Shown here in pieces: positions 17,201 through 20,200 of a stretch of 51,772 nucleotides of DNA. The stretch is taken from positions 1 through 51,772 of the forward strand of contig NIVC01003795.1 of NCBI GenBank assembly GCA_002269645.1, read 5' to 3'. Source of the stretch: Macrostomum lignano (Eukaryota). Made by a program: the position numbers and the translations under genes. The notes beneath the pieces were generated by a model, which was not told the DNA's origin, searched no databases, and was given only the letters and a program-made list of their open reading frames with translations. Positions within the stretch are counted from its first letter, which is position 1. Every line of letters begins with the position of its first letter.

Positions 17201-20200
17201 ACTCACGCAGCGGCAGCAGCCAGTCAGAGCGAGCTCAGAGCCGGCAATTGCACAGCTTCCTAACAAGATGCGGCTTCACTGCCAGGCGAGCCGAGCTCCA
17301 CTGCGAGGCGGCCGACTTTCTGCTTGTCCGAATCGCCCGGCCACTGGCCGCCGCAGCGGACAGATCCGGCCAGCTGGCCTGCCACCTGGTTGGCAGCTAC
17401 GCGGAAGGCTGGGGCGCCTGCCTGCTGCAGGCGAATGGCCGGCTGGCGGCCGACTCCAATGTTAACTGGCTGCTGTGTCGCGGCAACTGCGGTGAGTGAA
17501 ATTCAATTGATCACGTGACTTCTCCAGGCTTACAGCAAGGACTACTAGACTATATCAAAGTGTTCCTAGTGGTCCTTGGCTTATAGTTAGGCCATGAGGA
17601 AAGTGTCCAAATTTCCGCGGAACCGCCGCGGAATTTCGTGGAAAACTATGTGAAATGTGCTCCTCTTGGCTGGGTCAGTGGGGATGAGAATGGCTAGGAT
17701 TCCATATTCCTTCCTTGACTATGCTACTTTTTCTTTGTAGTCGCACATTATTAACGAGATTTAAAGTCATACTTGCTAGTTATCATATATCCCTTAGGTG
17801 CTTCGATTCATTTTTTAATAATGTCAGGCCATCACGTCACCGAAACTCAAAAAGGCTGAAATATTGAAGCGCTTTTTGATACGAAACAAAGAGAAAGAAA
17901 GAGAAGGAGAGAGGCGGCAGGGAGAAGGAGAGAGGTGGCAGAGAGAAGGAGAGAGGTGGCAGAGAGAAGGAGAGAGGCGGCAGGGAGAAGGAGAGAGGCG
18001 GCAGGGAGAAGGAGAGAGGTGGCAGAGAGAAGGAGAGAGGTGGCAGAGAGAAGGAGAGAGGGGGCAGAGAGAAGGAGAAAGCGGCAGGGGAGAAGGAGAG
18101 AGGCGGCAGAGCGGAGAGAGGTGGCAGAGAGAAGGAGAGAGGTGGCAGAGAGGAGAGAGGCGGCAGAGAGAAGGAGAGAGGCGGCAAGGGAGGAGAGAGG
18201 CGGCAAAGAGAAGGAGAGAGGCGGCAAGGGAGGAGAGAGGCGGCAGAGAGAAGGAGAGAGGCGGCAAGGGAGGAGAGAGGCGGCAAGGAGAAGGAGAGAG
18301 GCTTAGGGTTCAGTGGAATTGGCGTGACTGCTTGACTTGATTTGAGGCAGTGTCTGTGTCTGTATTAACAGATTCTTATATGTCTGCAGGTGCTAAATTG
18401 GAAACCTGAAGTACAAGGAGGCTACAACTGATTTTCTTAGAAATGAGCTGTAGGTCGATTTGTCGTATTTAGGATGTTCTCAAGAAATCCGATTTTTCTC
18501 CACTGAGTTCGTCTATGGCAAAACTCCTTTCAGTGCTATGCATTCTCGAGAGCATATTACACGTTTCTTATCGGCCTCCAGCTCAAAAAATAAAATAACT
18601 TATGAATCCTATCAATGGCCCATACATTCACTCGATCCTAGTTTGGTATCGACAGTCTCCTTCTTAGAGACCTGTATGCGGTGTGTTTTGCGTTAAAGTG
18701 TCTTATTAATGCTTATTTTGTGCCTGCTGTCGACTTAGCTCGTACTAAGCATTAATTATTAATTGCTTACCGCCTTGCACCACCAATACACACTGTAGAA
18801 CCTGAGCGGGAGCCCCGCACCATCGGCGACTGCCAGCAAGCTGGAATTTCGGTGCGCACCGACTGGCAGACGGGCAGGCGATGGCAGAATCCGCACGAGA
18901 CGGCTCGCATAGTGCAGCTGTTCCGCGGCGGCGGCGGCGGCTCCGCCAGGCAGTTGATGGTTCGTCAGACTCGCGACCTACCGGCCTGCTTTGCCAGTCA
19001 GGAGAGGCGACTCATGCGATGCCTGAGCACCGTTCAGGGCCAGCTGTTCACCATAGTGAAGCTCGTGTTCAAGCGAATGCTGCCATCCATGGGAGCCGCC
19101 GGGCTGACTTCCTACCACGCCAAGACAGTTCTGTTCTTCCTGCTGGCTCGGCACGCCCGTCGACGCAGCTGGTGGACGGTGGAGAATCTGCTGCCGCTAG
19201 TGAGGAAGACGCTGCATCTGACGCTGGAGCTGCTGGAACTGGACGCCAGGCCGTGCGTGGCCATGCCGCACTTCTTCGCCGACAACTGTCAGTTAGCATT
19301 TCGCGATCCATCGGTGGACACGAAATTGCGCGTACGCGAGTCGCTCAGTGCGTTGTGCGCTGATCCGAAAAAAGTTGACGACTTTCTTAGAAAGCACCTG
19401 CGTCCGGTGGTGTCGCAGAGGCAGCCGCTGTTCTTTCATCCGTTCACGTTGCTGCCGGCTGACTTTTTTAGCTTAGAACTGATGGAGACGCCTAACTCGG
19501 ATTCTGCCACAAACCAAGCGTTCGCGGATGTGTACCTGCTGGTCCAGCAGTGCCTTAGCGACTTGTCCTCATCGAGTCAGGCTGACAAGCAGTCCCGACT
19601 GACAAGGATCAGCTGCCTGCCAGCTTGGTGTCTTTGCTCCCGCCAGTGCTTGACAGCTCTAGCATGGCTTAGCTTTGGCGATCGAACTCGGGCCACCAAG
19701 GTGTTAGTACCGCAGACCAGTCACCGAGTCCAGCGGTACTGGGACTCGGAGCGCTGCTGTTTCTTTGACGGCCTGCTATCGAAAGAAGGAGCTGCTGGCG
19801 GTGTCCTTTATGCGAATCCAAGCAACTGCGGCGACTGGGGTTGGCGATTTTGTTTTAGCAGTCGAGGAGTTCGAGTGGCTCTGGAAGAGCTGCCGCAGTT
19901 CACCCAGGCTCTACTCCAGCCAAGGCCTGACTCGCTTGACCGTCTGTACGTAAACTTTCGTTGCATATCCTGGAGCCTGATGGCTGAGCTGTTGCCAAAG
20001 CACATTGTGTCCCCAGCCAATTGGTACGCTGAGATGAAGTTCGACCCCGATCATCAAGAGCTGCTTACTTTGGCTCATTACAGCGACAGTCCATTGCACC
20101 TTCACTTCTGTCGGACAATGCTGGAGGAACTGCGCAATCGGTCGCGTCTGGATTTGAGCTGCGAGATCGAGGCGGTGCAGACCAAGCTCAGCCGACTCAC

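Follow-up and report, generated by a model that had tools for sequence, protein, structure and literature searches.

Does a cGAS-like receptor (cGLR) gene whose two metal-binding aspartates have been replaced by asparagines still encode an enzyme, and if not, has it been kept for something else? The question is raised by Mlig014043g1, a gene on the + strand of a 51,772-nucleotide stretch of DNA (contig NIVC01003795.1) from the free-living flatworm Macrostomum lignano. This whole stretch is referred to as the window. An earlier reading made without database searches (the sequence-only reading) had flagged the gene as a candidate pseudoenzyme. Our analysis indicated that Mlig014043g1 is probably a paralogue of an M. 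lignano-specific expansion of proteins with ankyrin (ANK) repeats, a cGLR core, and a C-terminal domain, and that it has lost its nucleotidyltransferase (NTase) capacity and been retained as a non-catalytic protein.

Mlig014043g1 contains four exons. Its junctions are all GT/AG, with phases 0, 2, and 1, and the 845-amino-acid (aa) product matches NCBI PAA49754.1 ("hypothetical protein BOX15_Mlig014043g1") with 100% identity. The 845-codon frame had been described as fully open. This is correct for the spliced coding sequence and incorrect for genomic DNA, in which the open reading frame (ORF) around the N-V-N motif has only 83 codons (17248–17499).

The motif itself was as the sequence-only reading had described it. 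The codons are GAC for D342 (17452–17454), AAT for N344 (17458–17460), GTT for V345, AAC for N346 (17464–17466), and TGG for W347 (17467–17469). N344 lies 20 residues after S323. GSYAEGW and DSNVNW are separated by 13 residues rather than the 15 first given, and the distance from DSNVNW to FASQE, estimated at about 72 residues, was measured as 71, spanning the exon 3/4 junction. Three further genomic copies in assembly GCA_002269645.1 (L001–L003) and P0103, a protein model listed in UniRef only, also read DSNVNW, indicating that the two asparagine codons are not a sequencing error.

Mlig014043g1 was aligned with 57 paralogue segments (main alignment, 58 sequences), and a second, independent alignment (A1) was made. 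The GS of the activation loop was invariant in all 57 segments. At the N344/N346 columns, 50 of the 57 had D-x-D, three had D-x-N, two had G-x-D, and two had S-x-K. N-x-N was present in none of them (0/57), and the replacement of both acids in this way was confined to Mlig014043g1. A1 reproduced the GS/D-x-D register. The family was also compared by hhalign with four or five mollusc cGLRs from the screening table of Li et al. (99.7% probability, E 2.7e-24, 305 columns), and the GS...SDID of the family fell on the GS...SDMD of the mollusc proteins. Against coral cGAS-like proteins, DID fell on E-F-D, and RPAQD fell on ISVDLVPA, the third-Asp strand, with lower confidence (local mode, 53% probability). 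The hhalign run with the lone Mlig014043g1 sequence against the mollusc cGLRs misaligned the N-lobe, and its result was not used. These results, which speak against a chance register, place N344 and N346 on the D-h-D columns of the family, and these columns align with the [DE]h[DE] catalytic motif in bona fide cGLRs. The sequence-only reading had named the Asp at 17452 (D342) as a possible alternative catalytic acid. Most paralogues have D or E at this column in addition to D-h-D, so D342 is not a displaced catalytic residue.

The assignment of the protein to the cGAS/Mab-21-type NTases, already made by the sequence-only reading, was supported by the family profile, hhalign, and Foldseek. In a single-protein Pfam search, Mab-21_C (PF20266) matched aa 455–520 below threshold (18.2–19.8 bits against a cutoff of 24.1, E 0.001–0.003), and PF03281 (Mab-21) gave no match. 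A PDB sequence search with the protein alone also gave no match. The profile of 25 family cores matched cGLR1 (8gjy, E 6e-9), many cGAS entries (E about 1e-7), and MAB21L1 (5eog, E 4e-3), and 23 of the 25 family members matched Pfam Mab-21_C. As the lone protein scores below the Pfam threshold, the homology claim rests on the family-level profile. An AlphaFold2 model based on a multiple sequence alignment (MSA) had a predicted local distance difference test score (pLDDT) of 73.5 and a predicted template modeling score of 0.74. It was confident in the spine helix and the C-lobe (C-lobe pLDDT about 95). The single-sequence model of the full protein was not usable (pLDDT 44). The top Foldseek matches of the structure were all Mab-21-fold proteins, namely, MAB21L1, cGAS, MiD51, and MB21D2.

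The damage to the catalytic core is wider than the motif. In paralogues P0003 and P0004, SDIDW is followed after 45 residues by an intron, and the third Asp comes 17 residues beyond that intron. In Mlig014043g1 the intron lies 12 residues after NVNW, indicating that about 33 codons are gone from the 3' end of exon 3. The third-Asp column contains D in 41 of 47 sequences and Q378 (18867–18869) in Mlig014043g1, with D376 (18861–18863) two residues upstream; A1 deletes the third-acid strand altogether. In either alignment, the spacing to the third-acid position is about 29 residues, against 50–90 for a cGLR. The sequence-only reading had seen no clear third acidic residue, and the canonical register and spacing were indeed absent. 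In the RVSxSFxE segment, which precedes the C-lobe, P416 and C418 stand in place of the conserved R and S. The aa 353–414 region was predicted to be disordered (pLDDT < 50).

The extent of this erosion was evaluated with the 61 columns that are conserved at ≥85% in paralogues. Mlig014043g1 kept 3 of 22 such columns in aa 344–418 and 37 of 39 elsewhere (Fisher P=9e-11). The 37 kept columns cover the spine helix, the GS loop, the Mab-21 C-terminal lobe, and the family-specific C-terminal domain. Thus, the picture of two D-to-N swaps on a preserved fold had to be given up: judged from the sequence, the damage is a deletion plus the loss of nearly all conserved residues of the catalytic half. Because the metal ligands, a block of the β-sheet, the third acid, and the pocket residues are all lost, the catalytic activity of Mlig014043g1 is almost certainly gone.

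Pol-β-type NTases, cGAS among them, lose catalysis when their metal-binding acids are changed. Li et al. (2023) used a catalytically inactive mouse cGAS mutant as their inactive control and defined cGLRs by h[QT]GS-X8-20-[DE]h[DE]h-X50-90-h[DE]h (PMC9980059). In Mlig014043g1, structural homology to cGAS was found by family profile, hhalign, and Foldseek. The [E/D]-h-[E/D] position, expected 8–20 residues past GS, has the right spacing (20) and the wrong residues (N344-V-N346). With two of the four features of a complete active site absent, Mlig014043g1 should be filed as a probable cGLR-derived pseudoenzyme and not as a cGLR enzyme.

An exhaustive HMMER search with aa 261–845 yielded 95 relatives at E ≤ 1e-3, of which 16 reached E ≤ 1e-30 (phmmer E values from 2e-69 to 1e-3). 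The search space was 1.8 billion cluster representatives; counted in clusters, the family has at least 95. All 20 of the relatives that were looked up belonged to M. lignano. A word-indexed homologue search returned just PAA49754.1 itself and one alternative model. The family architecture comprises ankyrin repeats, a Mab-21-like core, and a C-terminal domain. Mlig014043g1 is collinear with the family end to end, with ANK, the GFT..RA spine helix, GS.[AS]EGWG, the QGQLF..K and SYHAKT of the C-lobe, and FHPF/WRFCF/YVNF. Its ankyrin repeats are degenerate (Pfam Ank_2, aa 159–230, E 1.3e-4, 22.9 bits, below the 27.3-bit cutoff), whereas the repeats upstream of the core score strongly in paralogues. 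The C-terminal domain (about 250 aa) was conserved in 55 domain matches among paralogues (alignment A2) and had no significant Pfam or PDB match. A TRIF-NTD-like identity was considered for it and was taken as noise (E 0.06–0.7 only). In paralogues P0009 and P0099, a caspase domain (Peptidase_C14, E 3e-25) was found after the cGLR core and ANK; provided that the gene models are correct, these two would represent a cGLR-ANK-caspase architecture. Some long ML2/UniProt models of the family bear unrelated domains and may be model fusions.

Partial motif loss was found in 7 of the 57 paralogue segments. The subclade of Mlig014043g1 mixes intact members (P0003–P0006 and P0012) with partly degenerate ones (P0009 with DMN; P0013 and P0016 with GID), indicating that motif loss is recurrent in the family. 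Five M. lignano proteins of this family (PAA93208.1, PAA68676.1, PAA86972.1, PAA45980.1, and PAA57558.1) are among the 140 proteins screened by Li et al. (supplementary file 3, rows 89–93; PMC9980059), so the ANK-cGLR family has already been catalogued as cGLRs. None of the five is named in the main text of that paper, which also states that most flatworms do not have cGLRs, except for Mab21-like proteins (PMC9980059). Its screening set was limited to proteins with complete active sites (PMC9980059), which places Mlig014043g1 outside it. We found no mention of Mlig014043 in the literature and, beyond the supplement of Li et al., no published description of a Macrostomum Mab-21 expansion. The sequence-only reading had ranked the gene as the best candidate for an undescribed system in the window. 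This rank was not upheld: the gene is a long-branch member of an expansion that has already been screened, partial motif loss occurs elsewhere in the family, and catalytically dead Mab-21-fold proteins are an already known kind. Mlig014043g1 is probably an ordinary dead-enzyme paralogue; the concept is known, and no new type of system is indicated.

Whether the gene is maintained was examined with its genomic copies. The exons of L002 and L003 were 99.9–100% identical to those of the window copy, and those of L001 were 99.2% identical. Exon lengths are the same in all three. The window copy and L001 differ by 12 synonymous and 7 non-synonymous substitutions (Nei–Gojobori dS 0.019, dN 0.0037), giving a dN/dS of 0.20 (binomial P=6e-4 against neutrality). 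The dS is comparable to the 2–6% divergence of non-repeat intron sequence. A young pseudogene evolving neutrally had been named as an outcome that would undo the sequence-only reading, and the ratio speaks against it. These counts lend thin support to purifying selection on the coding sequence between duplicated copies.

Several observations weigh against retention as a non-catalytic protein. The dN/dS is based on just 19 substitutions, and the NTase-like segment holds no non-synonymous and two synonymous differences between the window copy and L001. In the neighbour-joining tree, Mlig014043g1 sits on a long branch. Indels of 1 bp truncate the frame in two of the four genomic copies, L001 and L003, whose annotated products are shortened to 578 and 677 aa. 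The protein searches returned no transcript-derived fragments. As for the core, aa 355–410 align differently in the two MSAs, so that the state of the third acid is uncertain. The N-lobe was modeled with moderate to low confidence (pLDDT 52–66 around GS and NVN), and the Foldseek matches were weak (best E 2.4e-3, TM about 0.33) and mostly driven by the C-lobe.

The long branch, the frame-breaking indels, and the lack of transcript-derived fragments are also what speaks for a decaying, non-functional duplicate, together with the ~33-codon deletion, the loss of 19 of 22 conserved catalytic-half residues, and the weak scores of the ANK repeats relative to paralogues. The intact frame would then be a remnant from before disabling mutations build up. 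We consider this explanation unlikely, although it survives better than the others. Two copies, that of the window and L002, have kept an unbroken 845-codon coding sequence and canonical splice sites, and the window copy and L001 depart from neutrality. Erosion is restricted to the catalytic segment, which uniform decay would not give. In addition, P0002, a UniRef-only model with the three L001-type substitutions in its range (C518S, A521S, and E717K), crosses the L001 indel site without a frameshift. The indels of L001 and L003 may stem from errors in long-read assembly or reflect genuine decay of redundant copies.

A gene-model artefact was considered as well. If the mRNA were spliced through a different donor or acceptor, or held a micro-exon from intron 3, the NTase core would be fuller; N-V-N would stay, and the truncation would be wrong. 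The missing stretch falls exactly at the exon 3/4 junction, and M. lignano annotations disagree with each other (P0002 and P0104 against PAA49754). We regard this as very unlikely, because read-through of the exon 3 donor meets an immediate TGA stop (GGT GAG TGA), and a tblastn search for the middle segment (core residues ~85–180) of eight paralogue cores, run at word size 2 with E up to 100, gave no match and hence no hidden exon anywhere in 17492–18798. The in-phase junction also yields the annotated NCBI protein, and the copies L001–L003 share its exon lengths.

Least likely of all, with only a slight probability, is a still-active NTase that uses relocated acids (e.g., D342, D376, or E355/E357/E359) or Asn-carbonyl metal binding: D342 and D376 lie within two residues of canonical columns, an acidic E-P-E-R-E stretch follows β2, and some nominal pseudoenzymes are reported to have catalytic residues that migrated (PMC10211241), but D342 accompanies D-h-D in most paralogues and hence replaces nothing, the pocket is also without ~33 residues and the conserved R and S (positions 416 and 418), the region is predicted to be disordered, and the loss of catalysis on changing the acids counts against it.

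Non-catalytic retention therefore remains the preferred reading of Mlig014043g1. The protein is presumably made and would work through its retained surfaces, i.e., the ANK repeats, the C-lobe, and the C-terminal domain. The retention of these three parts suggests a binding, adaptor, or regulatory role; the most likely one would be a ligand- or partner-binding adaptor or a regulator of catalytically intact paralogues. A nucleotide sink, which the sequence-only reading had listed among the roles together with a decoy, a dominant-negative regulator, and a scaffold, appears less likely than partner or ligand binding because the nucleotide pocket itself is eroded. With ~33 codons and nearly all conserved residues of the catalytic half lost, rescue by an N-to-D revertant would be unlikely too.

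The screened M. lignano ANK-cGLRs belong to the same species-specific family as Mlig014043g1. P0003–P0006, its nearest relatives in the HMMER search, are 38–43% identical to it, and the screened PAA93208 and PAA68676 visibly resemble the P0003–P0006 subclade. The screened proteins and Mlig014043g1 have in common the ANK repeats, the spine helix, the GS-x20 motif, the Mab-21 C-lobe, the FHPF C-terminal domain, and the intron position class. The screened proteins keep D-I-D, the ~33-residue segment after β2, RPAxD (with the third Asp), and RVSxSF, whereas Mlig014043g1 has N-V-N, no such segment, Q378, and P416/C418.

Human OASL is a paralogue of the OAS family of immune-sensor NTases that lost its catalytic acids, was retained, and acts non-catalytically through appended domains. 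By analogy, Mlig014043g1 may be compared with OASL as an immune-sensor NTase paralogue without catalytic acids. OASL belongs to the OAS and not the Mab-21 subfamily, its appended domains are ubiquitin-like, and its NTase core is structurally intact; in Mlig014043g1, ANK and the C-terminal domain are appended, and ~33 core residues are deleted.

MiD51/MiD49 (MIEF1/2) and MAB21L1/2 use the Mab-21 fold as an adaptor or ligand-binding module, with transferase activity undemonstrated. MiD51 and MAB21L1 were among the Foldseek structural matches (5x9b, 4nxu, and 5eog). These proteins form old, conserved lineages, present in single copy, that have defined roles in development or mitochondria, whereas Mlig014043g1 is a recent lineage-specific derivative of an immune-type expansion. 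For MAB21L1, no NTase activity was found, and the crystal form was inactive (PMC4897736). According to Li et al., the putative active site is still complete in Mab21L1/2 (PMC9980059).

With its very large ANK-cGLR expansion, M. lignano is an exception among flatworms. A member that is no longer catalytic but has otherwise preserved its scaffold amounts to a natural separation-of-function allele, and the dead paralogue could reveal how ANK repeats, C-lobe, and C-terminal domain act alone. Whether built-in regulators without catalysis arise in expanded cGLR networks, as happened in the OAS family with OASL, is a further point that it could address. The features of the gene are listed in Table 1.

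Table 1. Features of Mlig014043g1 and indels of its truncated copies, in window coordinates
Feature	Position	Strand	Description
Exon 1, aa 1–150	11231..11680	+	ATG start, helical N-terminal region; GT donor at 11681, phase 0
Exon 2, aa 151–261	15403..15734	+	Degenerate ankyrin repeats
Exon 3, aa 261–355	17211..17491	+	Spine helix, β1 with GS loop, β2 with N-V-N
GS activation-loop motif, G322-S323	17392..17397	+	GGC AGC; retained
N344-V345-N346	17458..17466	+	AAT GTT AAC; replaces the D-I-D metal-binding motif of the family
Intron 3, phase 1	17492..18798	+	21-bp minisatellite at 17900–18302
Exon 4, whole	18799..20273	+
Exon 4 start, aa 355–418	18799..18989	+	Eroded remnant of the catalytic β-sheet half
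Mab-21 C-terminal helical lobe, aa 419–560	18990..19415	+	FASQE to SYHAKT to MPHFF; well conserved
Family-specific C-terminal domain (aa ~561–820), tail, and stop codon	19416..20273	+	Motifs FHPF, W-x-W-R-F-C-F, YVNF, and ELLTLAHYS
L001 indel	19463 (window-equivalent)
L003 indels (two)	11379 and 19866 (window-equivalent)

No further paralogues were found within the window. Upstream of Mlig014043g1, an exon at 8874–9410 (+) belongs to a Cys-loop ligand-gated ion channel (Neur_chan_memb, E 1e-23). The same ion-channel neighbour precedes the L002 copy, indicating synteny among the duplicated copies.

Downstream, on the same strand, is a RING/B-box/coiled-coil/multi-Tudor gene (26049–29367 plus an ORF at 31836–32648). 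Its RING matches are weak, and the first CxxC pair is not encoded. The NCBI models of this gene start 5'-partial exactly at the exon beginning 26049. The UniProt models P0002 and P0104 join it in frame, from an acceptor at 26048, with the cGLR-like gene at a GT donor near 20237, which lies 36 nt ahead of the stop codon of that gene. A cGLR-RING/Tudor fusion of this build is given in UniProt as A0A1I8ITB3 and A0A1I8ISV7. No coding exon is visible between the two genes (20274–26048). On these models, the dead cGLR module would serve at the N-terminus as a sensing or regulatory part, and a single long transcript would run on into the RING(partial)/B-box/coiled-coil/multi-Tudor gene 5.8 kb downstream, a reading that we hold to be doubtful and of low probability. 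If it were true, a cGLR-derived ligand-binding scaffold would have been repurposed to control a TRIM-like/Tudor protein, a kind usually tied to germline RNA pathways.

A GC-rich island (20470–20920, 53–63% GC) lies amid AT-rich intergenic DNA and contains a perfect hairpin, GGTAGAGCCC...GGGCTCTACC. It is the sole GC-rich island in 20274–26048 and was rejected as the missing 5' exon of the RING gene, as it has stops in all six frames. It had no Rfam match, and the Rfam scan of the whole window was empty. The island may be a repeat element. Further downstream, an ORF at 33808–34317 (+) had a sub-threshold match to DUF218 (E 3e-5, 24.4 bits against a cutoff of 27.6).

Exons in the window are GC-rich (58–71% GC), and introns are AT-rich with dense minisatellites. 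Mini- and microsatellites are extremely dense in introns and intergenic DNA, with 68 TRF rows (e.g., 11684–15326, 16052–17080, and 17900–18302). Intron 1 is filled by a 3.6-kb (AGTT)n array, and the 21-bp array in intron 3 yields overlapping spurious ORFs of 120–160 aa on both strands.

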